From Mobula birostris (Eukaryota), in assembly GCF_030028105.1 (NCBI RefSeq), contig NC_092398.1:28552424-28616423 (forward strand): 64,000 nucleotides of DNA, in the 5' to 3' direction. Under the pieces are notes generated by a model. That model was not told the DNA's origin and did no database searches. It saw nothing but the letters and a program-made list of their open reading frames with translations. This document shows, one piece after another, positions 9,486-40,487 of the stretch. The translations under genes were made by a program, and so were the position numbers. Every line of letters starts with the position of its first letter. The stretch's first letter is position 1.

Positions 9486-9558
9486 ATGAGTGTTTGCTGC
9501 AGGTTGGCCTTCGCGGCTCTCCTAGCTGAAGTGGTCTCTGTCGCGGCCATCCAGAGCG
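9486..9558 (+). CDS. MHC beta-type chain (candidate W-category WB), exon 1: leader
   Basis: caaagATG start, MSVCCRLAFAALLAEVVSVAAIQS, then G|gtaagt donor; 73 nt, phase 1, joins in frame to 11370. Confidence 0.85.
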
Positions 9559-10339
9559 GTAAGTTGGCTCAAGTCCTCTGGCACGCCACCGGACTGTCTG
9601 CCCGTAGGTCTGCACCTCGGACCGTCTCCTAGCACAGGCTGCGAGGAGAATTGGGGAGCTCTGAGCCACACCAGATTGGAGGCGGGGGGCAGGGGATTGG
9701 TTAGAAGCTGTTCAAAGTTAGGAGAGACTTTGATAATGTTCATGGTGGGAAGCTGTTCTCACAACCCGGTGATTCAGTCAGAAAGAAACAGGGAAAGGTA
9801 AACTAGAAACTGGTAAAGAAAAAAAAACATGATTCTATATTGTCTCTCTTTTAAACCAGATTTCTGGAGACAGATAGACAGGAAGGGTAACACACACAAA
9901 GAACTCAGATGATTAAGATGGCGCAGGCGGCAATTCGCGGGCGGCTCAGAAAACTTCTAGATATACAGTGTTTCTTCTGAAGTGTTATCGCTGCAGTCTG
10001 CAGCCTGTAATTTCTTTTTTAGGTTGTTAGTTGTTTTGTTTTGCATTTGCAGTTTACCTTCTTTGCCTGTCTTTAGCTTGTGTATAGTTTTTCATTGATT
10101 CCTTTGTGTTTGACTGTGAATGCCCGCAAGGAAATGAATCTCAGGGTGGTACGACATAGATGTACTTTGATAAATAACTTACTTTGACGTCTGGTGGAGA
10201 GAAATAACCTGTTGATGTATCAGGCTGTGACGATGACAACAGTGAGTGAGTGTGTGTGTGTGTGTGTGTGTACAGGGTCTGCATTTCCAGTACCTACAGG
10301 GTCTCGTGTCAGGAAGGGTCCTCACAAAGATCTCACTCT

Positions 10340-11330
10340 GGGTATAATGGTGCCCGTGGCCTGTACAGGCCCACCCTCTGGGTAAAATGATCTCCGTGGT
10401 GTGTACAGACGCACCCCCTGGGTAAGACGATCCCCATGGGGTGCAGACATCCCACCCTGCATAAACTGATTTCAGAGAGGTAGCATCATCAATTTGCGGG
10501 AGACTCCCGGGAGAGGTGGGATGTCTGCAATAGAGTAGCTCCTTAGCAGCCAGCCAGCTAGTTTAAATAACGTTAGCTATGCTAATGAACGAATGACACC
10601 TGTTAAACTCACCTCAACATGTCTTTTACGGTCTTAACCCACCATGGGCAATAGAAAAGTCACTGTTGCAAACAGTGCAGCGAGCAACACTGTCATTATT
10701 TTTGACCCCTATTAGGCAGGGGTACACTTTAGTGTAGTCTGGGGTGACGTACGTTTTATATTTTCTTTTCTTTGGAATACTCTGCCATGGCGCGCTCTCG
10801 CTCTCTCCCGCCCTCGCTCGTGCGCTCTCACTTGCTTTCTCTCGTGCGCTCTCTCTCTCGCTCACTCTCAAAAAAATTGATTTCTGTGATATTGTATATA
10901 ATTTGCGGGCATCAGGGAGCCATTATTCATATGCGGGAGACTCCCGGAACTTCCGGGAGAGGTGGGATGTCTGGGTGTGTACAGACCCACCCTCTAGGTA
11001 AAACTATACCCGTGAAATATACAGGCCCACCCTCCGGGTAAAACGATCCCTGTGGTGTGTACAGGCCCATCCTCTGGGTAAAACGATCCCTGTGGTGTGT
11101 ACAGGCCCATCCTCTGGGTAAAACGATCCCTGTGGTGTGTACAGACACACCCTCTGGGTAAAACGATACCCATGAAATATACAGGTCCACCCTCTGGGTA
11201 AAATGATACCCGTGAAATATACAGGCCCATCCTCTGGATAAAACGATCCCTGTGGTGTGTACAGGCCCACCCTCTGGGTAAGACGATACCCATGAAATAT
11301 ACAGGCCCACCCTCTGGGTAAAACGATGAT
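10340..11330. repeat. 40-bp minisatellite in intron 1, interrupted by a MITE
   Basis: Unit cctctgggtaaaacgatccctgtggtgtgtacaggcccat, with an alternative catgaaatat/cgtgaaatat variant. Confidence 0.95.
10444..10973. mobile_element. MITE-like DNA transposon inside the minisatellite
   Basis: 13-bp TIR CAGACATCCCACC (10444) / GGTGGGATGTCTG (10961-10973), plus an extra internal right-end copy at ~10516. TSD not clearly resolved. Confidence 0.7.
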
Positions 11331-11369
11331 GCGAAGTGTCTAACAATGGGTTGTTATCACTTCTTTTAG

Positions 11370-11642
11370 ATATGCACCTCTTTCACGTCCAGTGTGAGTG
11401 TCTCTTCCGTGGCCTTGAAGTGGACGACATACGCTTACGTTACGCCTATGATGGTGTTACTATCATGTACTACAACATGGAAATTAAGAGGTATGTTGCA
11501 GCCCAGCCCATGGCGCAGGCTGAGGTAGACAGGCGGAACTCGGAGCACGACTATGTTACATTGGTGCCTCACCGAATTGAGAGCATCTGCAATGAGATCA
11601 AACAGGCGGTCAGATCAAGCAACATCACCCTGGAAAACATGG
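11370..11642 (+). CDS. Candidate WB exon 2: membrane-distal beta1 (class I alpha2-like) domain
   Basis: ttcttttag acceptor, G|gtaaga donor, 273 nt, phase 1/1. DMHLFHVQCEC...RYAYDG...YVAAQPMAQAEVDRRNS...ICNEIK...NIT. Cys pair at domain positions 11 and 74, as in MHC beta1/alpha2 domains. Confidence 0.92.
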
Positions 11643-12129
11643 GTAAGATAGTTTAAAATTTACGATCATGTGTACGTCAAAACACCTCGTGTGCATTAAC
11701 CACCAATACACCCCAGTGCGTGCTGGGGGTAGCCCGCCAGGTTCGCCACACAATCCGCTGCCAAGATAGCACGCCTACAATACTCCAGCGGACCCGGACA
11801 CCATCGGGCTTTGACCTCTCCAATGGACTCACAGATTTGGCTCCTGCGGACAGGCCTTGATTTTCGAACCCCGACCCTCGACCCTGGGACTCGCTGATCA
11901 CCGAACACCTGGCCTTGAAATCCAGACTCGCCAATGATGGGACCTCGAACTCCGCACCACGTCTGCGTCGCTGGTCTTCGAGCTTCACATCAGTAGATAG
12001 ATCAAACACAGCACCATTGACCCAACTTCTCCCCACCCATCAAAGGGCCAAAATCAATGCAGACCCCCTTGGTGGCCTTTGGTCCCTATCCCTGGAAAGC
12101 TTTCCTAGCTAAACTTAGCTGTTCATTCA

Positions 12130-12825
12130 GGGCCTCGAGCAGTCCCTGCAGGTGAGGCAACACCTCACCTGCAAATCTTCTGGGGTCATTCCGCTGTGTC
12201 TGGGCCTCCTTGATGTTGGTGAGACCCGCCATAAATTGTGGGGTCAGCTTCATCGAGTACCTCCGCACCATCCGCCACCAGTGGGATTTCCCGGTGGCTA
12301 AACGTTATAATCCCGATTCCCGTTCTGACGCGTCTGTCCGTGGCCTCCTCTTAGCAGGGTGAGGTCACCCTCAGGGCGGAGGAACACCACCTTATATTCC
12401 ATCAGGGTAGCCTCTAACCTGATGGCATAAATACCGATTTCCCCTTCTGGTGAACAAATTTCTACCCTTCCCCTTCTCTATTCCCCACTGACCTCTCACT
12501 TCTTCTGACCTGCCTATTAATTCCCCCATTTCCCCTCCTCCTTCCTTTTCTCCAATTGTTCACTCACCTCTCCTATTCGATTCTTTCTCCAGCCCTTTCC
12601 CACTCACCTGGCTTCACCTATCACCTTCCAGCTAGCCTCTTATCCCATTCCCCCCCCCAACATTTTTATTCTGGCATCTTCCCCCTTCCTTCTCAGACCT
12701 GGTGAAGGGTCTCAGCCTGAAACGTCGACTGTTTAGTCTTTTCCATCGTTGCTGCCTGATTTGCTGAGTTCCTCAGTTTTGTGTGTGTGTTGCTTTGGAT
12801 TTCTAGCATCTGCAGACTTTGATGC
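12130..12825 (+). mobile_element. Penelope-like element 3' fragment (GIY-YIG remnant and end)
   Basis: Degenerate GIY-YIG region (TGCAAATC...GTTGGTGAGACC...TTCATCGAGTACCTCCG) and a decayed hammerhead block at 12695-12730. Confidence 0.7.
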
Positions 12826-15781
12826 GTTAGCTTACTTACTGTCCGTTACTCCGCTGGCATCTGGGGCAGCAATGACGGTCCTCCACCTCTGGAGTTCAAG
12901 CCTTCCCTTCATCGTGTCAGTAGCTCCCTCTCGGTTTTCACTGCTGTCACTGTCACGCAAGTCCTGGGCGTTGACACAGGAACACCGCCGGACTCAGATG
13001 CAGAAACATTCTTCATTGCTGTTTCCTTAACGATTTTGTTTAACCAGTCAACCCTGAGCTGAACCCCCCCGAACCCGGAGGGCCAGTGGACCAGTCTTGG
13101 TCTGGGCTCTACCCTTTGACCTTACCAAATGTCACGGTGGTCGGATATGGCCCAAGTGCGGAGAGCGAGAGATACTGAAGCGAGTCCACAGAACCATAAA
13201 TCATAGGAGCAGAATTAGGCCATTTGGCCCATTGAATCAGCTCCACCATTCAATCATGGCTGGTCCTTTCTTTTTAATCTCCCCCTCAACCCCAGTTCCC
13301 AGCCTTCTCCCCATAACCTTTGATGCTATGTCTAATCAAGAACCGATCAATCTCTGGCCAATGACTTGGCCTCCACAGCTGCCTGTGGCAACAAATTCCA
13401 CAAATTCACCACCCTCTGCCTAAAGAAATTTCTCCCCATCTGTGTTTCGAAAGGGCGCCCCTCTTTCCTGAGGCTGTGCCCTCTTGTCCTAGATTCTCCT
13501 ACCACGAGAAACATCCTTTCCACATCTACTTCGTCAAGGTCTTTCAACATTCGAAAGGTTTCAATGAGATTCCCCCTTCATCCTTCTGAATTCCAGCGAG
13601 TACAGACCCAGAGCCACCAAACGTTCCTCATAGATAACTCTTTCATTCCTGGAATCATCCTTGTGAAACTCATCTGGACCCTCTCCGAAGATGAGGGGCC
13701 CTAAGATGAGGCAGCCAAACGTTGCTGTGCTTTGCTCAAGTCTCGATATGCGCTACGAACAAAAGGATACTGTCACAATGAAATAATAATTAGCTGACAC
13801 GTGCACATTCGCAGGGCAATTGCCGAATCCGCTGCGCTGCCGATTCAGTGGTTGTGACACCAAGAGCCAAAGCACAAAGCCCTGACGCCAGCCAGCCATT
13901 GCTCTCTGGGTCATGGAGGCATAGCCCCCAAACCCAAAGGCAAGGCTGTGGACCTCTTGCAGGTTTGCACTGATCCAAACTTCTTTTGAATCTCCGGTTA
14001 GTACTTTAGTAATAAAATGACTTTGAACATTGTTATTGTACCTGCCTCAGGCACATACGTGCTCTGCACACAGAAGTTGAATGATAGCACCTTGTAAATT
14101 TTCAAGTCTTCCCTTAAAGCCTCTACCCTCCGGATTCAAGTTCCCAAAGATGGTGTGTGTTCAGCCCATCTTCGATCCTCATGATTTTCTAGTGTACATC
14201 TATAAATTCATTCCTCTAACTTCTGCGTTTCATAGAAACATAGAAATCTACGGCCCACAATGTCGAGCCGACCATATGACCCACTCTAGAAGCTGCCTAG
14301 AATTTCCCTACCGCACAGCCCTCTATTTTTCCAAGCTCCATGTACCTAACTACCTTTTCAGGGTGGAAAGTTTTGGCCCACCCAGCCTGTCCTCAAGTCC
14401 TGGCAGCATTCTCACATTTCTTCCCCTCGCTCCTTCCGGTTTAATTGCGTCTTCCCTAGGGCGCGTCAGCGAAGTAACCGGGAGGCACGTTAGCGCAGCC
14501 GTTTTAGAGCGCCAGCAATCGCCGATCGGGGTTCGATTCCCACCGCCGTCTGTAAGGAGTTTGTACGCTCCCCGATGACCACGTGGGTTTCCTACGGGTG
14601 CTCCGGTTTGCCCAACGTTCCAACGGTGTGCGGGTTACGGGCGTGTTACTTAGGCACCGGCAACGTGGCGTCCCCAGCAGGCTTCTCACCAATTTGATGC
14701 AAAAATGCGTGATAATCTATTTAATTAAAAAAAACTTCAGCTCCGTACAACACAGTGTGGCAAAGCGAGTCAGGGGAAAATGAGGTTTGAGGTTCGCATG
14801 GAGAAATTGTAAAACAAGTTTTGGAAGAAATCTCCTTTAGAGTCCTACAGCACAGAAACTGGCCTTATGGCTCAGATTTATTATATGCTCACCGGAACAG
14901 AATGAGGCCATTCGGCCCGTCGAGTCTGCTCCACCACCCCACCATGGCTGATTTATTATCCCTCTCAACCCTGTTCTAGAGTGATGTCCTCCTATTCTGA
15001 GGCTGTGCCCTCTATCCCGAGACAGTCTGACTATTGGAAACATCCTCCCCCACGCCCTCTCTATCTGGACCTTTCAACGTCTTTGATAGACGGCAGGCCC
15101 AGGGGCCGCCAAACGCTCCTCATCCATTAACCCTTTCATTGCCGGGATCCCGAGACCGTTTCGGGGCGGTAGTACAGTTCAATACGTAAAGTGCGGTGTA
15201 GTTATCTCCTTTGGCTGTATTCATGTTTGTGTTTGAACGGCTTTAAACAGTAGTATTAAAGAAGGGAGCAAAATCGGGATAGTTGAGACGTCTCAACTGT
15301 GTACAGACTTTATATACAATTTTAATATTGTCCCATTCAGCTCTAAATATTTAATCTCTGTGGGGGATTTCTTACTCCTGTAATGTATGGATCTATTTCT
15401 TTTAGAGCAATGATTCCCTCCCTCCCCCGCGCTGCAACGTGAATACACTAGTTCAAGTCATCTCCCTCGGACGTGCTTTTGTTTGATATGTAGTCGTGCA
15501 CAGACACGAGTAGAATCTGAATGTCAGAGAATATCGCGAACTGGACTAACAGTTACGGGACGAAACAGCGCAAGAAGTCCGTCACAGACACTAACAAACG
15601 CGTGACAGTGAAGGACGCGCTGAGTTTAAAGTGAAAATAACGTGACGATGGCTTCAGCCGGGAGAATTGATGAATTTGATCTCGCTAATGAGGCCGGGGG
15701 TCGTATATCGAGAGGGCTGAAACGCGAACAGCGTGGAGGAGCAAAAGAAAGCCCCTGCGCTTCTTTCTTAATGGGCCCAAG

Positions 15782-18700
15782 CAGGGGTGCAGTGCTAATT
15801 TTTTAGGTGCCGGAGCTGGCAAAATGCTTGCCTTTTCCTACATCCTCTCTCTGTATATGTCACACCCAATTTGTGTACCTGCTCATTTCATGTACTGGGC
15901 AACTTCCTGACCCCATTCATGTAATGAGCAGGTACACAAATTGGGTGTGACATATATATATGAATGGGGCTTCTTATAATGTCAAGCACTAAACCAAGAT
16001 GAAAGAAATAAATGATTTCCAGAGCTCCACAGAAATATAGTGATAGTTAAGACATTAACAAGATTATAGCCTATCATTACATTTCAGTGTACAACTGGTA
16101 CAAGAAAGCATATAATCCTTAATTTAATAATATGACAAAGTACTGCATGGTTGCACTCACTAATTATCATAAAATATAATTATCAAGCAAGTAAAGAAAA
16201 AGATGGTAATCATGTGTTTTACCAATTTAAAAGTAATTACCTACTTACCAAATGCCACCAATGAGAAGTTTCACAATAATTTCCACAAAAGGTCAGGAGT
16301 AATATGTGGTTGGAGGTCTGAAACATCTCTTGTCCTGGTGTCATCTGCTGATCTGTGGTACCGCAGCCATGTTGTGACATACGGCTCAGGATTCCACTGA
16401 ACTAGAGGAGGTCCGTGTAGTTTAACAAACATAAGTGATGATACATGATTTATGAAAATTCTTGGGCGTGTTGTTATTATCAAGTTCATGTGACTGAATC
16501 CTCTCTCACACTCAGCCGTACTAATAGGAATAACTTGTGAACAGCTCAGTAATGGGCGTAAATCTTGGGGGATGTGGCATCCACGATCCTCCACATAATC
16601 TCTGAAGGCATTTATTACAGAGGAAGAAGAACGCTTAAACCTCTTACAGAGAGAAGATATTGCAGCTTCTCCATAATCAGGGTTCCAGCCCGAAACATTG
16701 ACTGACCTTTTCCACGGATGCTGCCCGACCTGCTGAGTTCCTCCAGCGTGTTGTGAGTGTTCCATAATCAAGTGGTATTTCAGCAGGCCAGTTATCTTTA
16801 TCAAGGACACACATTTCATTTATCAGGGATTTATACATACTTTGAGGTTTAGAAGTTTGAGAACCTTTCAAGGATGTTGCCGTGAACATACAGTGCTGCA
16901 AATTGTTTATAAGACTAGTAAGAAACTGTAGATAATTAATGGAGACAATTTTGTTGTTGCTTGTTAAGGGAATTTCTCCAAACTTCCCCTTTTCAACTGT
17001 CTCTTGAGCTTCTAGAGTTTTTGTACCAGGTTTCTCTTTCAGTCCATGCAGTGGTCTTATGCTCTGTTAGATCAATTTGTCTGCATAAACAATCATAGTA
17101 GTGCGTTTCTGTAAACACTCTGACAGTAAACCAAGTTCATACAATGTGTCATACATTAGAGCTAAGTCCAATAGAAACTGTCCTGAAGGGAGTCTTTTCA
17201 ACAGACCTTCATAAGTTTTTCTGTCTCTCCCAGATCTTGTTTCATCCTTCATTGCTTTTCCAAAATGAAAACACAGTGCTTCATAATTTTGCCACACTGC
17301 TGAAACTGTTCAAAATGAGCTAGCTACCCACCTGGTGCCCAGAACACGGCCTATTTTGCAAATTTGTTGTTGTAGTTGAGAGACACATTCAGATAGTTCC
17401 TTTTGATTTAGACGTGATCTCCTGTAAACAGAGTACAATTTGTCCGTAAATGATTGAAAATGATTTATTCCATGAACCTCTGTCACCGAATCACCTACTG
17501 CAAGTTCTAATCTGTGATTAAGACAGTGCCAAATTATCACATCAGGGTAATGTTCCCTGAGGATTGTAGCAACACCAGATTTGACGCCAAGCATTACACT
17601 TGCCCCATCACTAGCAAATGCTACAAGGTTCTGTTTCAAGTAAGAGTCATGAAACCCATGGTTATTGAGACAGTTCAATAGATGCTAATCAATAATTGCA
17701 GTTTTCTGATCAGGCAGTTCAATTAGATCTGAAAACATAAAATGGGGATCACCTTGCTTATCACTTTCACATTTCAAATAAATTATTAGGGCAGTCTTAA
17801 TGCTCAGGCTTGTTGATTCATCAATGAGAACAGAAAATTTGCCATTTATCTGCTTGATATGCTGGCAAATTTTCTTATTCATATTAATGGCTATGTGATT
17901 ATCTCTGTAGCACTATTGCGGTAATGCAGTCTAATTCCAATGTCAATACCATTTTTTTTTGAAATTCCAATAAGCCAAAGTGATCAGAGTATGGTCTGTC
18001 ATTCTGGGCTGAATGATATGCAGAACGAAAAATTGAACAAGTTGCCTTTAGAGTTTCATTGTACCTATGTATAATGACAATAAAGATCATTCAATTCAAT
18101 TCAATAGATGCGAAGCATTCATGGTGTCACATAATTTTCCAAGAGCATCTTCACTAGCTATATTTTCAACACTTAGAGCAGCAGTGTGAGCTTTTGATAG
18201 TTTGTCATCAACAATTTTTTTTCTGAGCGACTTCAAGCATGTACTTCAATCAGCCCCCATAATAGGATACTTGGTACATCTGCTGTTCATTTGACAGCCT
18301 CAAACTCTTAGAAGTGAAAAGTGTCTGATTGCGTTTGTTTGCACATAGTTTACACCCAAGTTTATCATCCCTGAAGTCTAACGAAGGATAAGTTTCCTTC
18401 TTTTTCTTCCACATTTCTTCAGTCCAAACATCTGAACGGGGATACAAGCCTGACTTCGAAGGACCATTACTTTCAGAACTACATTTGGACCCGGTTAGAA
18501 AATTCGAACTAGAAGCAGGCAAAACGCAGCTTTTGTCACTTTTACTTTTATCAGTCTCTTGTACGTTATTCTTGTTACACTCCTCAGCTTGTTTACGAAA
18601 GAAAGAAGTTAACGTTGTTTGCTTAGAAACCATAGGGTTGTTAATGAGAAAAATTTACTTTTGTATTAGCAAGTAATCCATGGACCACCACAGATGTAGC

Positions 18701-19917
18701 CTTACTAAGTATAAGTATTTTTTCACGCATAATTTTGCCATCAACAGGGATATGCTTCTGTGATGTGTCCTCTAGCCACACACTTAATGCTTTCTCATTC
18801 TTTGCAAGCACTTTATCACGAACCAGAGAGATCATTTTTGGCCTTGTAGGGGTAGCACTAACACTTCCACGAATTTCAGCTTCTTTCTGCTTTATTGTGC
18901 GAAAGCTCGATTCATTCTCACCGACCTTACTGCCCACTTCAGCAAACGACGTGCCACTTTTCAAAAGATCCAAGATTTTTATTTTCTCGGTGAACAATGC
19001 TCAAACAGTGAGTGTTGGACAGAGACTGAGGATCTGTGAAATGGCGGGAGGCTACAGCAGGGTATGCTAGGAGAACGGGTCGATGAGGAGGAATTTCACA
19101 AATACCTAAAGAAAAAACTGTCACAGCTCCAGGATTTCACCAAAAACGATCAAATAGGAACAACACCTTATATTCCATCTGGGTAGCCACCAACCTGATG
19201 GCATGAATATTGACTTCTCTAACTTCTGTTAATGCCCCTCCTCCCCTTCACCCGCCGTCCCTTATTTATCTATCTATCTATCTATTTATTTATTTATTTA
19301 TTTACTATTTTAAATATATTTTATTTTTTCCCCTTTTATTTTCTCTCTCTCTTTTTTCTCCCTCTCACTATAACTCCTTGCCTGCTCTCCACCCTACTGG
19401 CTCCCCTTCCCACTTTTCTTTCTCCCCAGGCTTCCTGTCCCATGACCCTCTCCCTTCTCCAGCCTGGTATCCCTTTTGCCAGTCAACTTTCCAGCTCTTA
19501 GATCCACCCCTCCCCTCCTGTCTTCTCCTATCATTTTGGATCTCCCCCTCCCCCTCCCACTTTCAAATTTCTTACTATCTCTTCTTTCCGTTAGTCCTGA
19601 CGAAGGGTCCCGGTCTGAAACGTCGATTGTACCTCTTCCTATAGATGCTGCCTGGCCCGCTTTGTTCCACCAGCATTTTGTGTGTGTTGCTTGAATTTCC
19701 AGCACCTGCAGATTTCCTCGTGTCTGCAAATATCCTAATGTTATTAGTGGTACTTTCCCCACCAGCCACCACCCCCTCTCCCCAACCCCCACTTCCGTAA
19801 AATTCCCTCTATTTAATATGTGGCTGCTGTTAAATTCCCCACTTGTTTATTTTGACTTTTTTTTTTCAGAGGTGCCAGAACAGTGCTCAGGTGAGCTCTG
19901 GCAGCACTGCACCCCTG
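15782..19917 (-). mobile_element. hAT transposon with decayed ZNF862-like transposase
   Basis: Perfect 15-bp TIR CAGGGGTGCAGTGCT / AGCACTGCACCCCTG and perfect 8-bp TSD GGCCCAAG (15774-15781, 19918-19925). Fragments include IDESTS, FASDGASVMLG, WHCLNHRLEL, TRWVAS and STAECERGFS. Confidence 0.92.
18640..19120 (-). mobile_element. Tigger/pogo transposase N-terminal fragment nested in the hAT
   Basis: EKIKILDLLKSGTSFAEVG...NESSFRTIK...EKALSVWLED...VDGKIMREK are CENP-B-type HTH motifs. Confidence 0.85.
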
Positions 19918-20365
19918 GGCCCAAGGGTGTACGGTCTGTTACACAGTTTACTAACTCCTGCAAAGCCAGCAAGCAAGACGTTTGACGAAATTACAATTTT
20001 ACAAAATCACTTGAGCCTTAAACCACTGGTAATAGCTGAGAGATTTAGATTTTACAAAAGGACCCAGTCAAAAGATGAAAGCCTTTCTGAATACATTGCA
20101 GAACTGCACAAACTTTCCCAGTACTGTGACTTTAGAGAGGGACTTTCTGATGCATCAAGGGTCAGGCTTGTATGTGGCAGGCATGGTCAAAGCACCCAAA
20201 TGGGGCTACTGGCAGAAATGGACCTACCCTCAGGACAGGTATTGACCATTGCGATACCTTTAGAGACCGCAGCAAAGGAGTTTAGAATGTAAAATGCTTA
20301 AAATGTCCTTGAAATGTGCAGAAAGCCAGAATTGTTATCAATGTGGCAAATCCTCCCATGATACA

Positions 20366-21700: not shown

Positions 21701-21876
21701 AAAAGTTGGGGAGTAAAAGTTTCTCTTTGCATCATCTCTGTTGTAATAACGAGACTTTTGATTTGTGTTAGGGAGAATACGTCAAGAGGAGTGTCCTTTT
21801 TTGTAAATTTTTCTGGAACTTCTGAGAAAATTAAAGAAATTTGGCCTGTCCCCTAAAACCCTCACTAATCTTTATA

Positions 21877-22410: not shown

Positions 22411-22419
22411 TATAAAGTA

Positions 22420-23898
22420 TACTTCCTTTTCCAAGGGTAAAGGGGACAATCCATGATTAGTCATCCTCTTGAATTCGATCTTGCAACTGTGTCCTCCAAG
22501 AAACAGGGCCCATCTCTGCATTTGTGCTGCTGCTGGTGGAACACCCTCGATGATCAGTAACCAGGGTAAACCCTCTCCCATACAAATGTTGAAATGTTTC
22601 ACACCTCAAAGCAGATTCAAGGCCCCTCTGTCAATCTGTGTGCAATTTTTCTCTGCACCTATACCAAAAGGCAAGGCACCACAGGCAAGATTCACTGGAC
22701 TACGTGGATTGTAATGTGTGACTACAGTGTCTGACGCTACCATTTCCTTTAGCTTTTTGAAAGCAACCAGACACTGTTTCCTGCAGGAATGAGTTGGAAG
22801 GGTGGAACACAATAGCCAGGTTTGGCAGGAACCAGTTACTGTAGTTGACGAATCCTGAAAGGACGGAAGCTGTGACACATCCTTTCACCTTGGGGCATTC
22901 TCCACTGCTTCAATTTTCTCAGCACACTTGTGCAATCTTAGAGTGTCAGTGCTTGACTGCAGTAAGTGATGCTTGGTTTAAAAAATTCGTGCTTGTCGCA
23001 CCGTGCTCTGAGCCCATAATCTTCTAATCTTTTTAACACTCTCTTCAGGATTTGGACATGTTCCTGTTATACTTACCGGTAACAATGATGTCATCCAGGT
23101 AACACCGAGTGCTTGGAAAACCTTGCAGTATCTGGTTCATAGCTCTCTGCCAGAGTGCAGCTGCAGATGGCACTCCAAAAATAAGCCTATTATAGTGATA
23201 AAGCCCTTTGTGAGAGTTTATGCTGAGAAAGACTTTGGAGTCATCTTCTATCTCTGTCTGCAGGTAGGCCTCAGCTAAGTCCACTTTGCTGAAGTGTTTT
23301 CCTCTAGAAGGGTTTGTAAAGATATCCTCCATCCTAGGCAGAGGGTATTGATCTACTTTCAGTTCTTGGTTGATGGTGACCTTAAAATCACCACAGATCC
23401 TGACAGACCCATTATTCTTGTCTACTCGGACCACTAGCGTTGCCATGGGCTCCACTCAACCTTGGAAGGAATTCCTTCAGCATCCATGTGATCCAGTTCA
23501 CTGGTGCTTCATCACGGATGGTAGAAGCAAGTGGACGGGCCTTGCAAAACTTGGGCGTGACATTTTCATTTAACACCATTTTACCCTTGATATGTTTGAG
23601 TTTTCCAATCCCATCCTTGTCACCAATGTTATGCTTTGTATCTTCAAAGCCTTAAACTAATTGAAAGAAAGACATGCGCGTCTAACTTCGAGTTTACTTC
23701 AATCAAGGCACGCGTGAACCATGTGGTAGCGTGATTGCGCATGCAGTTAGCGTATTTATACATGAAACAGTCTGGTTTCCTCAGTCTAAGCAAGACAATC
23801 TCCGGCCCCGTCAAATGTCTGCGACTGAGTCACGAGCCCACCCCGTAACTTCCTGTTCATGGGGGGGTGGATGCTGTGTAATTCATTACCCTGTCACA
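22420..23898 (-). mobile_element. Internally deleted Gypsy element: LTR, tRNA-Ser-type PBS, RT and RNase H remnants
   Basis: LTR TGTGACA...ATAACA (23898..23627) with TATAAA; PBS TGGTGACAAGGATGGGAT (23625..23608). Followed directly by PKFCKARP, RICGDFKVTIN, YPLPR, CYLDDII and RMQRWALFL. Confidence 0.85.
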
Positions 23899-26408: not shown

Positions 26409-26678
26409 CTCCTACCCATACCAGAGCCTTCATGCAGAAGAAACGGGGTCAAATGTACCTGGTGTGCACGGCCAGGAACTTCTTCCCCCGGGACATTAAA
26501 GTGCGGTGGGTCAGAAACGGGGAAGTCACTGACAATGGATCAGACACGACCAACGTTGTCCCTCAAAGCAATGGAGCCTTTCAAGTTAGGAGCGTCCGCC
26601 CCCTGGATGGAGACAGCTGGGGGTACGTCTGTCAGGTGGAACACGAGGCAGTCGATGGGAAGTTGCAGATACCTCTTG
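26409..26678 (+). CDS. Candidate WB exon 3: C1-set Ig domain (beta2, class I alpha3-like)
   Basis: tttcttcacag acceptor, G|gtaaga donor, 270 nt, phase 1/1. LVCTARNFFPRDIKVRW...VVPQSNGAFQVRS...YVCQVEH are MHC C1-set motifs. Confidence 0.95.
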
Positions 26679-28044: not shown

Positions 28045-29262
28045 ACCATAAGACAAAGGAGCAGAAGTCGGCTACTCGGCCCATCGAGTCTGCTCCGCCA
28101 TTTTATCATGAGCTGATCTATTCTCCTATTTAGTTCCACTCCCCCGCCTTCTCACTATAACCTTTGATGCCCTGGCTACTCAGATACCTATCAATCTCTG
28201 CCTTAAATACACCCAATGACTTGGCCTCCACTGCTGCCCGTGGCAACAAATTCCATAGATTCACCACCCTCTGACTAAAAAAATTTCTTTGCATTTCTGT
28301 TCTGAATGGGTGCCCTTCAATCCTTAAGTCATGCCCTCTCGTACTAGACTCCCCCATCATGGGAAACAACTTTACCACAACCACACTGTCCATGCCTTTT
28401 AACATTGGATATGTTTCTATGAGGTCTCCCCTCATTCTTCGAAACTCCAAGGAATACAGTCCAAGAGCAGACAAATGTTCCTCACATGTTAACCCTCTCA
28501 TTCCCGGAATCATTCTAGTGAATCTTCTCTGTACCCTCTCCAACGTCAGCACGTCCTTTCTTAAATAAGGAGACCAAAAATGCCCACAGTACTCCAAGTG
28601 AGGTCTCACCAGCGCCTTATAGAGCCTCAACATCACATCCCTGCTCCTATACTCTATTCCTCTAGAAATGAATGCTAACATTGCATTCGCCTTCTTCACT
28701 ACTGACTCAACCTGGAGATTAACCTTAGGGGTATCCTGCACGAGGACTCCCAGGTCCCGTTGCATCTCAGAACTTTGAATTCTCTCCCCATTTAAATAAT
28801 AGTCTGCCTGTTTATTTTTTCTGCCGAAGTGCATAACCATACACTTTCCAACATTGTACTTCATTTGCCACTTCTCTGCCCATTCTTCCAATCTATCCAA
28901 GTCTCTCTGCAGACTCTCCGTTTCCTCAGCACTACCGGCCCCTCCACTTATCTTCATATCATCAGCAAACTTAGCTACAAAGCCATCTATTCCATAATCC
29001 AAATCGTTGATGTACAATGTAAAAAGAAGCGGCCCCAACACGGACCCCTGTGGAACACCACTGGTAACCGGCAGCCAAACAGAATAGGATCCCTTTATTC
29101 CCATCCTCTGTTTCCTGCCAATCAGCCAACGCTCTATCCACGTATGTAACCTTCCCGTAATTCCATGGGCTCTTATCTTGTTAAGTAGCCTCATATGTGG
29201 CACCTTGTCAAAGGCCTTCTGAAAATCCAAATAGACAACATCCACTGCATCTCCCTTGTCTA
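28045..29262 (-). mobile_element. CR1 LINE 3' portion with an open 371-aa RT C-terminal reading frame
   Basis: [24 protein letters not shown] and KFADD motifs with no stops, suggesting a relatively young copy. Confidence 0.92.
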
Positions 29263-30737
29263 GCCTACTGGTAGAGAGAATAACTTTAAGAGAACAACCA
29301 CTTGAGGGAACATCTTACTTGACTCGAGTGATTACCCTTCTACCAATTCTCTTTACAGGGATTTGGATCGTAGCCTCCTATGTCTTGGCAACTCAGATGC
29401 AATCGGTACAATGTTATCGTCACTTGAATGAGCCAATCTCTCCTGCCTTGTGAAAAACACACGAGGGAAATTAAATTTTACAACAGTCTCATTGGAGACT
29501 GGATAATTTACCCATCCCCAAGTGGAAATGGACAATACTCCTGCTCTCCCCTCTCTAACTCAAACACGTCTACCACATCAACCATCTTGTCAGCAGAATA
29601 AGAACCTAGAACCTAGTGGGACTAGGTGAGAGTAAGAGTTCGGCACGGACTAGAAGGGCCGAGATGGCCTGTTTCCATGCTGTAATTGTTATATGGTTAA
29701 AATCAATCCAACCCTTCCCTTTCACAGAGCCCTCCATTTTTCTATCATCTATGTACCGATTTAAGACTCCTAAATGCTCCTAATGTATCTGCCTCTACTA
29801 CCACCCCATGCACAAACACTCTCTGTGTAAAAAGTCTCACCTCTGACACCCCTCTATACTTTTCTCCAATCACCTTCAAGTTGTGCCTCCTCATAGTAGC
29901 CAGTTCCACCTTGGCTACTCGATCTAGGCCTCTTATCACCATATACGCCTCTACACCTCTTCTCCTCCTTTGCTCCAAAGAGAAAACCCTGAGATTGCTC
30001 AGCCTATCCTCACAAGGTATGCTCTCTAATCTGGGCAGCATCCTGGTAAATCTCCTCTGCACCCTCTCTAAAGCTTCCACACCCCTTCAGTGTTCAGTGA
30101 CTGGAACCGAACACAATACTCCAAAATTAAGATTATTGTGCATCATATTGAACTGAGTCACAGTGTAATCCGCTTGTCTGTGCAATTGTTTGCATCTCCC
30201 TATGGTTCAACACCAAACTGCGCTAAGACAGATTAACAGAGTTTTATTGTACATACAGACACACCTAGGATGGTGGGGTGGATGTATGTCTCTGCCAAAG
30301 GAGGTGTGAGGCAGTCCTTCCCTCTGCTAGTCTGCAGGTCACCTTTGGGCAAATGTAGCATCTGCTTAGCCCCCGATCAGGGTCACGTGAAACCATGGGA
30401 GCAGGTGGTGGATGGTTGTATGAAAAGCCAGTGCAGATCACAAGCCCTGGTTATGCGACCACTGACACCAGGCAGACAATCTCTGAAGAGTACTGATAAT
30501 GGCTGGGGTCACTCGTCTTGTAAAGACAATAACAAACCGCTTCTGTAGAAATATTTGCCAAGAGCGATCGTGGTCACGAAAGGGCCATGATCGCCCACGT
30601 CATACGACACGGCACGTAACGAACAGACAGTCCCATCAGAATTATTTTGGCATTAGACGATACATTGGGGAACAGTGCTGCTAGATTTTCAGAAAAATTA
30701 CCCAGACATCGCAAAATCTCCAACGTTTTCTCCTCAG

Positions 30738-30851
30738 AACACAACGCACTGGTTGAGAATGAAGATTTGATCATTGTTGGAGTTGTTCTGGGGGCACTCG
30801 GGCTGTGCGCAATGGTGGTGACTGGAAGCTTGTACTGCTGCTCCTCAGAGG
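30738..30851 (+). CDS. Candidate WB exon 4: connecting peptide and transmembrane segment
   Basis: ttttctcctcag acceptor, G|gtaagt donor, 114 nt, phase 1/1. EHNALVENEDLIIVGVVLGALGLCAMVVTGSLYCCSSE. Confidence 0.9.
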
Positions 30852-31930
30852 GTAAGTGGCTGCGAGACTTACAGAGAGGCTCAGGGAACAGTCACCGGAC
30901 TGGTTTCTGCTAAAGTGCTTCAAGAAAGGATCAAACTTCTCTTTGATGAACCACTGGGGAGCCACTCCCATGGAGCACCTTCTCTGGGTCCATCACCAGA
31001 GGCAGGGTTTCCCAGTGGCCACCCATTTCAATCCCACTTCCCATTCGCACTCCCTCCCATCTAGAGCGGAGAGCTGACCAGCTGCGTCACGGCCTGGCGT
31101 GGAAACCCCAGTGCCCAGGAATGGAAAGGCCGACAGAACGAGGAGGATACAGCCCAGTGGTTCCTTAAGGTTGCCATAGCCGGGGTGGGCCAAGGTGGGG
31201 ATGAGCTCCCACTACCCATTAAGTGGCCTCAGTCATGGCGGAGACTAGGCCAGAAGCCACAGTGTCACCTGTTAGCAGCTGCCCAGGGGGAGTGTCCATG
31301 ATGGGGTGTCTATGCTTGAGTCAGGGCTGCCATTCCCCCCCCCTCCTCCCCCTTTCTCCACCCCTCCTGCACATCCCCAGTGATTTTTGGATAGAAGACA
31401 AGCCATACTGTACTCGACTGCAGACTGCTGCAATGTTCATGGACCCAGGGGCTTGGACTACCCTTTTTGGGTGATTGTATTTTACTGCTATCTTACAGTA
31501 CTGTGAAAAAGCCCTCGGCACATATAGGTGCGGAAGACGTTTGCACGGTGCGGTATTTGTCAATGTGGAGTGGACAGCGAGTTTGTAAATCTGGCGGGAG
31601 CAAAGGATGTTGGGAGTGGTGAGGGTGGCGTGTGGGACAGGTGGCAGAGAAGGAGTTGCCAGGGGAAAGAGAGGGGTGGCATGGATGCAGACACACCCAG
31701 CCCTGAGACACCAGGCAAGGTCATTTGATTCTAAACAATTGGTTTATTGATCATTACAGAATGACTCTCCTGTGCTTCCCGCTCCCTTCCCTCTCCCTTC
31801 CTCTTTCCCCAACCATGATTCCCCTCTCCCCGTCCCCTTCCCACTCTCACTCCACAATAGAGATCCACATCAGAATTATGAAATCATGTCATGAAATTAC
31901 ATTTTTTTGCAGCAATATATAAAACTACTA

Positions 31931-36166: not shown

Positions 36167-36196
36167 GGGCAAAAGTGCTGAACTCTCAGCAGACAG
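36167..36196 (+). CDS. Candidate WB exon 5: 30-nt cytoplasmic mini-exon (GAKVLNSQQT)
   Basis: Strong acceptor tctcttgtttctcccacag and donor CAG|gtgaga; symmetric phase 1, preserves the frame. Confidence 0.65.
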
Positions 36197-39021
36197 GTGA
36201 GAAAAATCAACGCTGGTGTCGGGACTGGGGGGGGGGGCGGAAGTCTTCAAAATGTCTATGTGGTGAAGGAACTTAGATCAATATTACATTAGATTATGAG
36301 GACACGCAGTCCTCTTTTATTGTCATTTAGTAATGCATGCATTAAGAAATGATACAATGTTCCTCCAGAATGATATCACAGAAACACAAGACAAACCAAG
36401 ACGGAAAAACCGACAAAAACCACATAATTATAATATATAGTTACAACAGTGCAAAGCAATATCGTAATTTGATAAGAACAGACCATGGGCACTGTAAAAA
36501 GAAGTCTCAAGGTCTCTAGAAAGTCCCATCATCTCACGCAGACGGTAGAAGGAAGAGAAACTCCCTTCCTGCCATGAGCTTCCAGCGCCGCAAACTTGCC
36601 GATGCAGCACCCTGGAAACACCAGACCACAGCCGACTCTTGAGTCCGTCGGAAAACTTCGAGCCTCCGACCAGCCCTCCAACATGGAGCACTGAGCACCA
36701 TCACTGCCGAGCGCTTCGACCCCGGCTCCAGCAACAGGCAACAGGCAATAGGCAAAGCCGAGGATTTGGGGCCTTCCCCTCCGGAGATTCTCAATTGCAC
36801 AGTAGCAGCGGCAGCGAAGCGGGCATTTCAGAAGTTTCTCCAGGTGTTCCTCCATGCTTCTCATATCCACCTCCATCAAATCAGGATTGTGCACAGTACC
36901 TACTTACAAATACGATATCATTTCGGAGCGGCCGCGCGCGCTGCGTCACGCCACCACCTTTTCCTCCCCTCCCCATATATTCGCTGGTATTCAGAAGAGT
37001 GAGAGGGAATCTTATAGAAACATGCATATAAAGTTATGAAAGGAGAAGATAAGGCAGAGGCATAAGACCATAAGACAACGGAGCAGAATTAGGACATTTG
37101 GCCCACTGAGAGTCTGCTCCACCATTCCGTCACGGCTGATTTATTATCGCTCTCAATCCTGTTCTCCTGCCTTTTCCCTGTAACCTTTGGTGCCATTACT
37201 AATCAAGAACCTGTTGACCTCCATATTAAATATATGCGTGACTTGCACACATGGTGATGAAAAGTTTATGTCCTTTGATGATAATAAATTTACTTTGAAC
37301 TGGCACGGAAGAGAGGAGAGGAGGTGTGGGGTAGATCAGCCATGACTGACAGGGCAGAATTGAGGGGCCGAGTGGCCTACCTGTGCTCTTTGTCTTGATG
37401 TAATTGCCATGGATGTCGGGGTGGAGATACGTCTCTACCAACGGTGGTGTAAGGTGCTCCTTCCCTCCGCTGGCCTGCAGGGCACCCTTGGGCAAGGTGT
37501 AGCACCTGCTTAGCCCCCGATCAGGGTCCTGTGAAGCCATGGGAGCAGGTGGTGGACGGTCGTATGAGCAACTGGTGCATATCACAAGTCTTGGTTGTGT
37601 GACCACTGATACCAGGCAGACAATCTCTAAAGAGTATTGGTGGGGCGGGGGGGTGGGGGTCACCCGTCTTGTAAGGACACTGCCCAGAAAGCGGCAATGG
37701 CAAAGCACGTCTGTAGAAAAATTTGCCAAGAGCAATCACGATCGTGGAAAGTTCCACCTCATCTGACACGGCACATAACGAATGAACGATTCACTTTGCA
37801 GGGCTCAGGAGGGCTTATTGCTAACCTGAGCCTTCTACTACAGCAGCGCGACCCTTCCAAGGGTCAAAGAGTTGTCACTGATAAAGTTAAACTTTGAACC
37901 AACATTTCTTGCTCAGCCTCTTGTAAACAAGGAACAGTGGAGTCCACGTTGGCCTAGTGATTGAAGAATAGGAATTTATTTAATCTGTGGGACTCATTGC
38001 TACTGATGGCTGTGGAGACCGAACTTTGTGCATATTTAAAGTGGAGGTTTGATAGGTTGGGCACGTGGCCCAGTCGTTAAGGCATTTGTCTAGTGATCTG
38101 AAGGTTGCTAGTTCGAGCCTCAGCTGTGGCAGCATGTTTGTGTCCTTGAGCAAGGCACTTAACCACACATTGTTCTAGTGTCTGTGCGAGGAGTGGCACC
38201 CCACACAGACTTTCAATCTGCACCTCGAAAGGCATGAAAATGCCCGACACAGGCCTCTCATGGTCTGAGTTGACGTTCCCTCCCTCCCTCCCCCCCTTTG
38301 ATAGGTTCTTGATTAGTAAGGGTGTCAAGACTGCAGCTAGCGGGGCAATATCTACGCCACCCCGAGCTACCTGCCAGCCTAGTCATCATATGGGAGCCCA
38401 AGCACGGGAGGATGAACCCTGGGCGCCCTCCCAAGACTATGGTCAACACGCTCCTAGAAGAGAGCGGCGCGGCTAATGTAGATGAACTGAACACACTGAT
38501 GAGGGAGAGGGAGAAGTGGAGAGTTTGTCATCGTGCCTGATGCCGGCCCCTTAGGCCTGAGTTGACGTGGTGGTAGTAGTAAGGGTGTCAAAGGTCACGG
38601 GGAGAATGGGGTCCAGAAGGATGAAAATCAGCCAGTTGGTCTGAAATCCTCTGTCTTATGGTCGTATGGTTTTATGGCAGGGTGTTGTTCGATTTCATGC
38701 CCTATGGTGCATCGGGTGGCATTTTTGGCGTTTCCGTAGCATTTGACTATTTTTTTGCGAGGCAGAGTTGGCGGCTTGACACAGAAAGTGTGCAAAGTGC
38801 TGGCCGGATTTGAACTCAGGACCATTCGCCTCGAAGTCCAGTGCTGATGCCAGTACACCATGGGCCAGCTTTTATGGCAGGATGATACAAGCCTAGGACA
38901 AGAAGGATCTTGGGGATACTTACCTCAGATAGGGCTTAAAGTTTTGACTTAAGTTTGGAGCTTAACAGCACTCAATATCACTGCATCCTACAAGATGTCC
39001 GTTCTTTCTCTCTCTGTGCAG

Positions 39022-39120
39022 CAAAGTTCAATAACCAGGGGGGACTGTGCCGGTTGAACACGTGCAGTGCGAGCGTTCGGTCCAGTGACTCTGGCGTCTC
39101 CAATTCCAGTGCCAGCTCAG
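39022..39120 (+). CDS. Candidate WB exon 6: Ser-rich cytoplasmic exon
   Basis: ctttctctctctgtgcag acceptor, CAG|gtaccg donor, 99 nt, phase 1/1. AKFNNQGGLCRLNTCSASVRSSDSGVSNSSASS. Confidence 0.75.
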
Positions 39121-39199
39121 GTACCGGTGTGCTTGTAAACCAGCCTACTCAGCGACCGGCTCCTCCATTTCAGCCAAACCACCATCACTGGCACTCACC

Positions 39200-40010
39200 C
39201 TCTCCAGCCTGCTCCCGAGATGGGCATGGAGGTTGACGGAGTGGGGGGGGAAGTAGGGGTTGCGGATGAGGGGGAAGGAAGAGGAACTGGTTTCTACCTC
39301 AGTTTGTGGCAGCTGAGGGCTGGGGTGGGTAGGGTGCGAAGTGGACGGGGAGGGGTCAAGGAGGTGAAGGAGGAGGAGCTGGATTCCATGCTCAGGTAAT
39401 GGTGTCTGGATGGTTGGGGGCGAGGAGGGGGAGGAATGGAGATTGATGGTGGAGGAGCTCATTCCCTACCTCAGGTAGTGGCGGCTGGGAGGGAAGGTAG
39501 AGGAGGCGATGGCTGGGGGGGAGAAGGAGCTCGTTCCCTCTCTCAGGTAGTGGTGGTTTGGTGGATGGAGGTGGAAGGGAGGGAGACAGAGGGGGTGAGG
39601 CGGTGGTTGGGGGCTGGCTGAGCAGGTAGTGGCAGCTGGAGGGGTGGGGTAAAGGGCAGAGGGGGAAGAGGTGGACAGGAGGGGGAGGTTAGCGGGGAGG
39701 GGTGGGAGTTTCTTCCCTCCTTCAGGTAATGGCAACTGGGGGGAGACAGGGGAGAGGGACAGGTGGAGGGAGGGAGAGGTGGAGGGGAAGTTTGATTCCT
39801 ACCTCTGTGTTGCTGGCTGGTTGGGGGAAGGAAGGGGGTGGTTAGAGAAGGGGGGAGAGGCTGGTTTCCTACCTCAAGAATTGGAAGCTGGGTGGGCAGG
39901 GAGGGGGAGAGGTGGAGGAAGAGGACAAGCGGCTCTCTTCCTCAGATAATGGCTGATTGGGAGGACTGAGTGGGGGGGGGGTGGGTGATGGAGGTTACGA
40001 CAAGGGGTTT
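39200..40010 (+). repeat. G/purine-rich low-complexity tract in intron 6
   Basis: Dense G3-G7 runs, with the degenerate motif ctacctcag/aggtagtgg recurring. Confidence 0.8.
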
Positions 40011-40458
40011 GGGGATTTAGATCGGACCGCAATCTCCACCCACCCCACCAGCTTGTAGTCACGGTCAGGGGCCAGAGGCAGATGACGCTCCCGCTCTCCC
40101 TCCCCCCCGCCCCCGGTGCGGTCCAGCGGCCAAGGCACACTGCGCCAACGTCCAGAGGAAAGGGAGAGCTGGGGCAAGAGGGAGGCCTTAATGCCTGCAG
40201 ACCCCGGAGTCTGGAGCAACAAACAATCTGCTGGAGAAGCAGGACAGCATCCGAGGGAGGAAAGAGGTTCCTTGAAGTTTCGGGTCTCGGCTCAAAGCGC
40301 CAAGAATTCCTTTCCTTCCACAGATGCTGCTCAGCCGGTTGTGATCTTCCAGCACATTGTCTGTGGCTGAGGGAACAAGACTTCAACGACTCTTTGTATC
40401 TTGCCCGTCTGTCGCGAGAGTTTCTGATCCACCGGCCATTGTATGTTCTTCTTTTCAG

Positions 40459-40487
40459 GTGACGGACTGACGAAACCTTCCTCTTAA
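40459..40487 (+). CDS. Candidate WB exon 7: C-terminus GDGLTKPSS and stop
   Basis: ttcttcttttcag acceptor, phase 1, TAA at 40485-40487. Summed CDS 73+273+270+114+30+99+29 = 888 nt (295 aa plus stop). Confidence 0.65.

Follow-up and report, generated by a model that had tools for sequence, protein, structure and literature searches.

The stretch of Mobula birostris DNA analysed here (64,000 nucleotides, hereafter the window) contains a complete MHC gene of seven exons on its plus strand, between positions 9486 and 40487, and the first coding exon of a divergently transcribed neighbor on the minus strand. Judged from sequence comparison, the complete gene is very probably the manta/devil-ray ortholog of WB_Nds5L, a W-category MHC beta-chain gene of elasmobranchs, and the neighbor is its head-to-head partner, WA_DS5L. 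The individual features are the following.

Positions 5451–5511, minus strand: leader exon of WA_DS5L (MDLFGFLMALLLPMATGEEIG), followed by the donor GTGAGT; the body of this gene extends before the start of the window.
Positions 5512–9485, between the two genes: intergenic region of ~4 kb separating the divergent start codons, composed partly of interspersed repeats.
Positions 9486–9558, plus strand: exon 1, 73 nt, start codon and signal peptide (MSVCCRLAFAALLAEVVSVAAIQS), followed by the donor GTAAGT.
Positions 11370–11642, plus strand: exon 2, 273 nt, phase 1-1, membrane-distal (beta1) domain.
Positions 26409–26678, plus strand: exon 3, 270 nt, phase 1-1, C1-set Ig (beta2) domain with the motif P-Q-S-N-G-A-F-Q.
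Positions 30738–30851, plus strand: exon 4, 114 nt, connecting peptide plus a GxxxG-bearing transmembrane segment (LIIVGVVLGALGLCAMVVTGSLY).
Positions 36167–36196, plus strand: exon 5, a cytoplasmic micro-exon of 30 nt (GAKVLNSQQT) with AG/GT borders.
Positions 39022–39120, plus strand: exon 6, 99 nt, cytoplasmic, with two conserved Cys residues and a Ser-rich stretch.
Positions 40459–40487, plus strand: exon 7, the final eight complete codons (DGLTKPSS) and the stop codon TAA.

The initial annotation of the window had proposed seven GT-AG exons, all in phase 1, that splice to an open 295-residue protein, and this model was upheld. In-silico splicing of the seven exons (AG/GT borders, every one in phase 1) yielded a coding sequence of 888 nt, which encodes 295 amino acids, contains zero internal stops and terminates in TAA; all 12 splice sites were canonical and the frame of the spliced sequence was open. 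The encoded domains occur in the order leader, one membrane-distal domain, C1-set Ig domain, transmembrane segment and long tail, and the gene spans 31 kb owing to introns filled with repeats. When the same seven exons were spliced in the colinear locus of Mobula hypostoma (L001), the product was exactly the NCBI protein P0024 (293 aa), the coding sequence of which starts in the ortholog of exon 1 (L001:10001-10067).

Exons 2–4 and 6–7 were located independently by tblastn with elasmobranch homologues, while exon 5 was located by tblastn with P0024, using its peptide GAKVLNSQQT. The ortholog of this micro-exon (L001:38128-38157) is required to rebuild P0024, and the peptide is also present in the M. 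birostris protein P0031. When 448 short phase-1 candidates were scored against tail peptides from sharks and skate, the true exon 5 was not placed high, and only the Mobula protein led to it. Another candidate, an 'NPT' peptide at ~31030 that resembles a shark tail exon, was rejected for lack of a GT donor. Six-frame translation of the 64,000-nt window, searched with family HMMs, revealed no second Ig exon, no alpha1-like exon and no intact second distal exon. A broken distal-like exon is present elsewhere in the window.

Expression of the gene was apparent in assembled transcript contigs. Record 13 of X2 (2203 nt) and record 19 of X5 (2290 nt) join exon 1 (9557) directly to exon 2 (11369); their 5' starts lie at ~9422 and ~9441, respectively, and exon 1 is covered to 9557. 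These contigs derive from runs labelled only 'RNA?', whose coded organism is ~3% divergent from the window, and the junction between exons 1 and 2 was the sole one of the six to be checked in transcript contigs. The initial claim that no alpha1 exon intervenes between exons 1 and 2 is thus borne out, as contigs from two runs splice the leader straight to the distal exon. The gene is intact and transcribed, its splicing being seen in contigs of the ~3% divergent organism.

The 1:1 ortholog in M. hypostoma, P0024, has the same exon structure within a colinear locus of 93–96% nucleotide identity, and is 96% identical in amino-acid sequence to the window protein over its full length, from which it differs by two fewer leader residues and 11 substituted positions. 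Comparison of the two species gave a dN/dS of 0.28 (binomial p 0.003–0.01), while the introns differ by ~4%. The gene is under purifying selection. An intact-looking but functionless relic, i.e., a recently silenced or decaying paralog, is highly improbable. The run nearest to the window (X1) indeed provided only one exon 2 contig of 165 nt and low depth, and the broken distal-like exon indicates that W exons do decay in this region. Against a relic stand the open frame with its canonical splice sites, the low dN/dS in the face of the intron divergence, tail motifs and cysteines that are invariant across sharks and rays, and the spliced contigs of ~2.2 kb, which were assembled at depths of 17–34 from a close relative.

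The M. birostris protein P0031 (172 aa) coincides at 100% identity with residues 124–295 of the window protein; it begins within the Ig exon and lacks both leader and distal domain, and its NCBI name is 'IgG receptor FcRn large subunit p51-like'. The public M. birostris model is therefore truncated and misnamed as FcRn-like. P0024 is named 'SLA class II histocompatibility antigen, DQ haplotype C beta chain-like', and neither record carries a W-category label.

Exon 2 encodes a His at position 3, a CxC pair, the sequence YAYDG and an N-I-T glycosylation site. The His and YAYDG had both been singled out initially as class I alpha2 features, and both are present: YAYDG lines up with the Y-A/G-F/Y-D-G stretch of class I alpha2 and provides Ala32 and Gly35, which are marks of the W-category and of class I. 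Taken alone, the distal exon exhibited weak matches to class I alpha2 in Pfam and the PDB, with no other sequence matches in either, and its nearest Atlas clusters were class I fragments. The family profile of the distal domain scored about as well on class II beta1 as on class I alpha2, and its best PDB match was a chicken class II beta chain (E 0.0015). Pfam MHC_II_beta was not listed for the window distal exon in the Pfam exon scan; it was listed for one of 14 family proteins, with an E-value (0.011) far from the Pfam cut-off.

The class I character of the distal domain raises the question of a class I-type heavy chain, whose alpha1 exon was missed, was lost from the assembly or resides in intron 1 or upstream. 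The single-sequence Pfam and PDB matches to class I alpha2 only, the class I-like Atlas features and the FcRn-like name of the public model all favor such a reading. Moreover, the alpha2-alpha3 portion of class I chains (HLA-A2, chicken YF1/BF2 and the turtle protein P0032) shares with the window protein the YAYDG-type motif, His3 and P-x-x-x-G-x-F/Y-Q, and its match to the predicted fold equals that of class II beta, since the E-values of the AF2 model were the same for HLA-DR beta as for class I alpha2-alpha3. In contrast to class I, however, the window gene has a single distal exon and no alpha1 domain or exon, and it adjoins a gene for a membrane-anchored alpha chain, whereas class I pairs with beta2-microglobulin. 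The contigs of two runs join the leader exon to the distal exon, the NCBI model of M. hypostoma has the same structure, the transmembrane segment bears a class II-type GxxxG motif, and all named family members, from at least 15 elasmobranch species, possess a single distal domain (258–333 aa in total length). The chance that a class I heavy chain is encoded here is very small.

In class I molecules, Gln96 and Asp122 bind Trp60 of beta2-microglobulin. The equivalent residues of the window protein, at distal-domain positions 6 and 37, are His and Thr, and the initial annotation had taken this change as a sign of a divergent or atypical WB lineage. That suggestion was not sustained: His6 and Thr37 are the usual residues of WB_Nds5L, present in the Dataset S1 rows for great white shark and bullhead shark and in most of the family alignment. 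Gln6 and Asp37 are characteristic of many molecules of the W-category and class I, yet are missing in the published WB_Nds5L rows (PMC8713811). His6/Thr37 is therefore a trait of the subgroup and gives no ground for exclusion from WB_Nds5L. Owing to the two replacements, no hydrogen bond between Trp61 and Asp37 can arise here as it does in class I and in other W molecules. Loss of this bond pattern applies across the whole published WB_Nds5L subgroup.

The Ig domain of exon 3 was recognized by Pfam as C1-set (E 7e-16). Its sequence V-P-Q-S-N-G-A-F-Q includes the family-invariant Pro57 and a Gly at position 61, where Trp61 is absent. According to the published rule for WB beta2 domains, Pro57 is present and Trp61 is lacking (mostly replaced by Gly61), as in class I alpha3, while Trp61 is reported to be invariant in conventional class II beta2 (PMC8713811). 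The initial reading of a class I-type P-x-x-x-G-x-F-Q motif, with no Trp at the site of the class II 'NGDW' sequence, was confirmed: in an alignment with a class I alpha3 domain from turtle, P-Q-S-N-G-A-F-Q lies opposite P-S-G-D-G-T-Y-Q. In terms of Atlas features, the Ig domain as a whole has class II beta fragments as its nearest neighbors; a search of the PDB with the Ig-domain profile provided no ranking of class I versus class II, as the matches were swamped by multi-domain antibody chains.

The affinity of the Ig domain to class II beta bears on another interpretation, namely a non-classical class II beta chain that is highly diverged, comparable to DO or DM beta, and owes its class I-like residues to convergence or chance; a W-category label would then be superfluous. 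The window gene shares its exon and domain architecture and its phase-1 exons with conventional class II beta genes (HLA-DRB, chicken BLB2 and shark DAB), together with a GxxxG-bearing transmembrane segment and a divergently transcribed alpha-chain gene alongside, and the predicted fold of its product covers the whole DR beta chain. Many family members are named 'class II ... beta chain-like' by NCBI, and the chicken match of the distal profile points in the same direction. NCBI naming cuts both ways, however, since other members are called FcRn, HFE, ZAG, MR1 or RLA class I-like. Unlike conventional class II beta, the window protein is devoid of the beta2 Trp61, has no Pfam MHC_II_beta match, which is also nearly absent from its family, and combines the class I-type distal residues His3, Ala32 and Gly35 with Pro57 and Gly61, all of which are common to class I. 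Its tail occupies three exons and ~50 residues, versus a short tail in conventional class II beta, and the adjacent gene is WA_DS5L rather than a class II alpha gene. A divergent class II beta chain is consequently considered very unlikely.

The C-terminal portion of the protein also bears a family signature. In the transmembrane segment encoded by exon 4, the glycines of G-V-V-L-G-A-L-G are family-invariant, and a GxxxG motif has been described in the transmembrane domain of W-category beta chains (PMC13399432). The cytoplasmic tail is rich in Ser and Cys and is distributed over three small exons; F254, G259, C261, C266 and the serines of exon 6 are invariant in the family, as is the D-x-L-T-K ending encoded by exon 7.

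These characteristics are those of WB_Nds5L ('next to DS5-like'), a subgroup of W-category beta chains that Okamura et al. (PNAS 2021, PMC8713811) described in sharks (great white shark, cloudy catshark and zebra bullhead shark) and in the little skate. WB_Nds5L is one of three W-category beta-chain genes in elasmobranchs. At E < 1e-8, only the elasmobranch WB_Nds5L family was detected by exhaustive HMMER searching from the distal exon, a search with the family profile returned almost solely members of this family, and an Ig-region search gave seven candidates. BLASTP against the proteins of Carcharodon (P0015) and Heterodontus (P0016) yielded E-values of 1e-91 to 1e-100. P0015, in its distal and Ig stretches, and P0004 match the WB_Nds5L strings given for great white shark and cloudy catshark, respectively, in the supporting information of Okamura et al., and P0016 is the Heterodontus homologue. 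Full-length identity to the window protein is 69% for Pristis, 61% for Heptranchias, 54% for Heterodontus and 49% for Carcharodon, while exon 2 is 97% identical to that of M. hypostoma and 50–54% identical to shark WB_Nds5L. A tree confined to family members, with a single turtle class I sequence as its root, tracks batoid phylogeny, with support of 100/98 for the window plus Mobula, 94/99 on addition of Hemitrygon and 82/94 on addition of Pristis.

The resemblance to published WB_Nds5L extends over the entire molecule, in which the same layout of leader, beta1, beta2, connecting peptide/transmembrane and cytoplasmic segments is found. The distal domain shares the H-x-F-H-V-Q-C-E-C start, the Y/F-D-G-x-T motif and the helix start A-E-V-D-R-R-N-S; the Ig domain shares F-F-P-R-D-I-K and V-P-Q...F-Q; and the C-terminal part shares the L-I-I-V-G-A-V-L-G transmembrane sequence, the Cys/Ser-rich tail and the D-x-L-T-K ending. 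Position 61 is a Gly in the window protein, versus Arg, Lys or Ser in several shark members. The WB identity inferred in the initial annotation is thereby corroborated by the class II beta layout, the P57/G61 and A32/G35 pairs, the 49–54% identity to P0015 and P0016 and the head-to-head WA_DS5L leader exon, the arrangement common to both the window and published loci. The gene is a new member of a published lineage and not a new gene type; it is a myliobatiform (Mobula) ortholog and is absent from Table S1 of Okamura et al. (PMC8713811).

The neighboring exon at 5451–5511 is orthologous to the first coding exon of a 254-residue C1-set neighbor in Hemitrygon (L003) and Pristis (L002), and the alpha1/alpha2 exons of these neighbors are 58–62% identical to WA_DS5L of the great white shark. 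The spacing of the two start codons is likewise conserved, at 3.9–4.2 kb in Pristis and Hemitrygon. The intergenic region presumably holds both promoters; within 340 bp upstream of the ATG, pattern searches for Y box, X2/CRE, RFX half-sites and ISRE revealed nothing convincing.

The product of the window gene would be a type I membrane glycoprotein of 295 residues, whose distal domain is modelled as four strands and a kinked helix. By analogy with published W-category work, it would most likely pair with the alpha chain of the divergent neighbor, WA_DS5L. The resulting heterodimer would have a class II shape, in which the interdomain contacts are presumably made by class I-type residues, and may constitute a surface-expressed non-classical MHC molecule with a putative ligand. 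Formation of a WA/WB heterodimer, and arrival of WB at the cell surface only in company with WA, have been shown for the tiger salamander only (PMC8713811).

WB_Nds5L might further represent a functionally distinct W branch, with an altered alpha/beta interface, a thiol-dependent link to a ligand or between chains, and a tail that controls trafficking or signalling by phosphorylation or palmitoylation. This proposal, tentative and rather doubtful at present, arises from three traits: the subgroup-wide exchange of Gln6 and Asp37, which hydrogen-bond the key Trp of beta2-microglobulin or WA alpha2, for His and Thr; an invariant extra Cys, located on a beta-sheet strand two residues N-terminal of the disulfide Cys; and the long three-exon tail with its two invariant Cys residues, periodic array of Ser and invariant D-x-L-T-K end.

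The W-category and WB_Nds5L, including a batoid member, were already published in 2021 (PMC8713811). The known picture of MHC evolution is unchanged by the locus, and the automatic names given to the WB_Nds5L family alternate between class I-like and class II-like labels. Because the W-category has been proposed to link MHC class II to class I as an intermediate, each well-resolved W locus helps to test the intermediate model. What the present locus contributes is a complete WB_Nds5L gene of a myliobatiform ray, supported by transcripts, and exon 1 of the partner WA_DS5L; it extends the WA_DS5L/WB_Nds5L pair, with its conserved spacing of ~4 kb, across the batoids Mobula, Hemitrygon and Pristis.

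In silico splicing of the gene at 9486-40487 (+) yielded seven exons totalling 888 nt and an open protein of 295 residues, exactly as the initial annotation had proposed. The AG/GT borders and phase 1 were read directly from the sequence in all four of exons 1-4.

Features of the window gene and its surroundings (position, strand, description and, for exons, means of location)
9486-9558, +, exon 1, start codon and signal peptide; sequence reading
11370-11642, +, exon 2, membrane-distal domain; sequence reading and tblastn with elasmobranch homologues
26409-26678, +, exon 3, Ig domain; sequence reading and tblastn with elasmobranch homologues
30738-30851, +, exon 4, connecting peptide and transmembrane segment; sequence reading and tblastn with elasmobranch homologues
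36167-36196, +, exon 5, 30-nt micro-exon; located only via the M. hypostoma peptide GAKVLNSQQT
39022-39120, +, exon 6, tail exon; tblastn with elasmobranch homologues
40459-40487, +, exon 7, tail exon with stop TAA; tblastn with elasmobranch homologues
28130-29245, 23045-23455, 16271-18997 and 29745-30080, -, long open frames within introns 2 and 3
5511-5451, -, start codon and signal-peptide exon with donor GTGAGT, 5' end of WA_DS5L

In Mobula hypostoma the locus aligns colinearly with the window, across introns as well as exons, at 93-96% nucleotide identity, and the seven exons, mapped to that locus and spliced, gave a protein identical to its NCBI entry (P0024, 293 aa). The public M. birostris protein P0031, named 'IgG receptor FcRn large subunit p51-like', has 172 aa, all of which match the C-terminal part of the window protein (residue 124 onward) at 100%, so that M. 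birostris or a species nearly identical to it is most likely the source; as a public model it is truncated, without the leader and distal domain.

Assembled contigs of four public runs were aligned to window 5800-11750. Contigs from two runs labelled 'RNA?' (X2, 2203 nt; X5, 2290 nt) match 9441-9557 and 9422-9557, respectively, continue unbroken into 11369-11642, and each run ~1.8 kb past the aligned stretch. At this junction, the one covered by the contig evidence, splicing therefore joins exon 1 straight to exon 2 and leaves no room for an alpha1 exon, in agreement with the class II beta layout originally read and against the refuting transcript form that the initial annotation had named. 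In both contigs ~3% of exon 2 positions depart from the window sequence, so their source is a close relative or else a divergent allele. In X1, the run closest to the window, the only contig was 165 nt long, identical and inside exon 2.

The 0.9-kb coding sequence is spread over 31 kb because of repeat insertions in the introns. The long minus-strand frames in introns 2 and 3 look like remnants of transposase genes and of reverse-transcriptase genes (with an FADD motif); adjoining stretches have contig depths in the thousands, which indicates high-copy repeats. A tandem array with a period of ~40 bp occupies 10927-11346 in intron 1, immediately 5' of exon 2; alignments of the M. hypostoma locus to this array fall at several offsets, spaced by 40 or 80 bp, and the M. 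hypostoma locus is about 285 bp longer at this place, so that the two Mobula genomes differ in copy number.

An exhaustive HMMER search with the distal exon against 1.8 billion representatives returned only 10 proteins, the strong matches being elasmobranch proteins of ~300 aa. Word-indexed searches named members in batoids (Mobula, Hemitrygon, Hypanus, Pristis, Amblyraja, Rhinoraja) and sharks (Heptranchias, Heterodontus, Carcharodon, Scyliorhinus, Mustelus, Hemiscyllium, Chiloscyllium, Stegostoma). Full-length identity to the window protein was 96% in M. hypostoma, 69% in Pristis, 61% in Heptranchias, 54% in Heterodontus and 49% in Carcharodon. WB_Nds5L sequences have been printed for great white, cloudy catshark and zebra bullhead shark (Okamura et al. 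2021 supplement, PMC8713811); the Carcharodon (P0015) and catshark (P0004) proteins match the printed strings, and the window protein aligns to both throughout, which bears out the earlier assignment to WB. In the within-family tree the window gene joins M. hypostoma (100/98), then Hemitrygon (94/99) and then Pristis (82/94), the order of the species phylogeny.

The domains are of hybrid class I/class II character. As a single sequence, the distal domain had no match to Pfam MHC_II_beta and weak class I alpha2 matches only (Pfam MHC_I, E 0.042; chicken YF1, E 0.03). Its family profile matched class II and class I about equally well, with E 0.0015 for chicken class II beta and E 0.006-0.013 for class I alpha2/ULBP. 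In Atlas language-model features, its nearest neighbours were class I fragments (0.92, versus 0.86 for class II beta), and those of the Ig domain were class II beta fragments (0.95). The Ig-domain motif P-Q-S-N-G-A-F-Q aligns to P-S-G-D-G-T-Y-Q of a class I alpha3 domain, and the Trp reported as invariant in conventional class II beta2 (PMC8713811) is absent, as previously noted. AlphaFold2 modelling of the 96%-identical ortholog (mean pLDDT 67, 70-88 in both domains) gave four strands and a kinked helix, with an Ig fold after them; the matches of this model to HLA-DR beta chains and to class I alpha2-alpha3 have equal E-values (~1e-13). The suggestion that the gene is atypical even for WB, made because Gln96 (Q6) is replaced by His and Asp122 (D37) by Thr, did not hold: great white and bullhead sharks have the same residues in their published WB_Nds5L rows, and Thr is the majority residue at D37 across the family alignment of the distal domain.

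In several sharks and little skate, WB_Nds5L lies next to WA_DS5L wherever linkage is known (Table S1, PMC8713811). In Pristis and Hemitrygon, the WB ortholog has an upstream, opposite-strand neighbour of 254 aa with a C1-set domain, and 3.9-4.2 kb separate its start from the start codon of WB. The alpha1 and alpha2 exons of this neighbour share 58-62% identity with great white shark WA_DS5L (datasets of PMC8713811). Its first coding exon is a clear ortholog of the 5511-5451 exon, Hemitrygon differing at three residues only. The 5' end of WA_DS5L therefore lies in the window, in head-to-head orientation to WB_Nds5L; in this genome WA_DS5L is known from this leader exon, the remainder lying before the window start.

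At 59545-59727 (-) lies a broken distal-domain-like piece (G-Y-D-C-K-D-V-T-Y-F-D-F-S-A-R-K-F...) that contains frame changes and stops and has a weak match (E 0.007) to the WB_Nds5L distal-domain profile at positions 26-57; no matching Ig exon was found anywhere in the window, and the piece is probably a decayed exon of another minus-strand WB gene. In Pristis pectinata, a 296-aa gene (L002:31824-36263, -) with a weak MHC_II_beta match and a C1-set match lies downstream of the WB_Nds5L ortholog, tail to tail, and is possibly the WB gene that comes next in the W cluster; in the window, the equivalent part at 41-64 kb contains no intact Ig exon.

The window gene has an intact frame, canonical splice sites and spliced contigs, and it is under purifying selection (dN/dS = 0.28 versus M. 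hypostoma; 10.5 synonymous and 10.5 non-synonymous changes; binomial p 0.003-0.01). Among the residues invariant throughout the family are the disulfide cysteines, the transmembrane glycines and, in exon 2 (V-Q-C-E-C), an extra Cys that precedes the conserved disulfide Cys by two residues. The cytoplasmic tail of the family, encoded by exons 5-7, is unusually long and strongly conserved: two Cys are invariant, Ser residues are spaced along it, and it has a D-x-L-T-K end.

The W-category (2021), its WB_Nds5L subgroup and one batoid member were already published, and NCBI lists the M. hypostoma gene with an automatically assigned class II name; our literature search for Mobula and MHC class II found no paper linking both. 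What this analysis newly adds is the assignment of the Mobula gene to the W-category, a full-length model in place of the truncated one, and the conservation of WA_DS5L/WB_Nds5L spacing across three batoid orders. Automatic NCBI names within the orthogroup alternate between class I-like (P0006, P0014, P0026, P0029, P0030, P0031; RLA class I, HFE homolog, H-2 class I, zinc-alpha-2-glycoprotein-like, MR1-like, FcRn-like) and class II beta-like (P0002, P0015-P0024), which reflects its hybrid sequence character; such inconsistency is a trap for surveys based on annotation. By analogy with the published W genes (PMC8713811), the Mobula chain would pair with WA_DS5L in a class II-shaped heterodimer with class I-type interfaces, which may serve a non-classical role.
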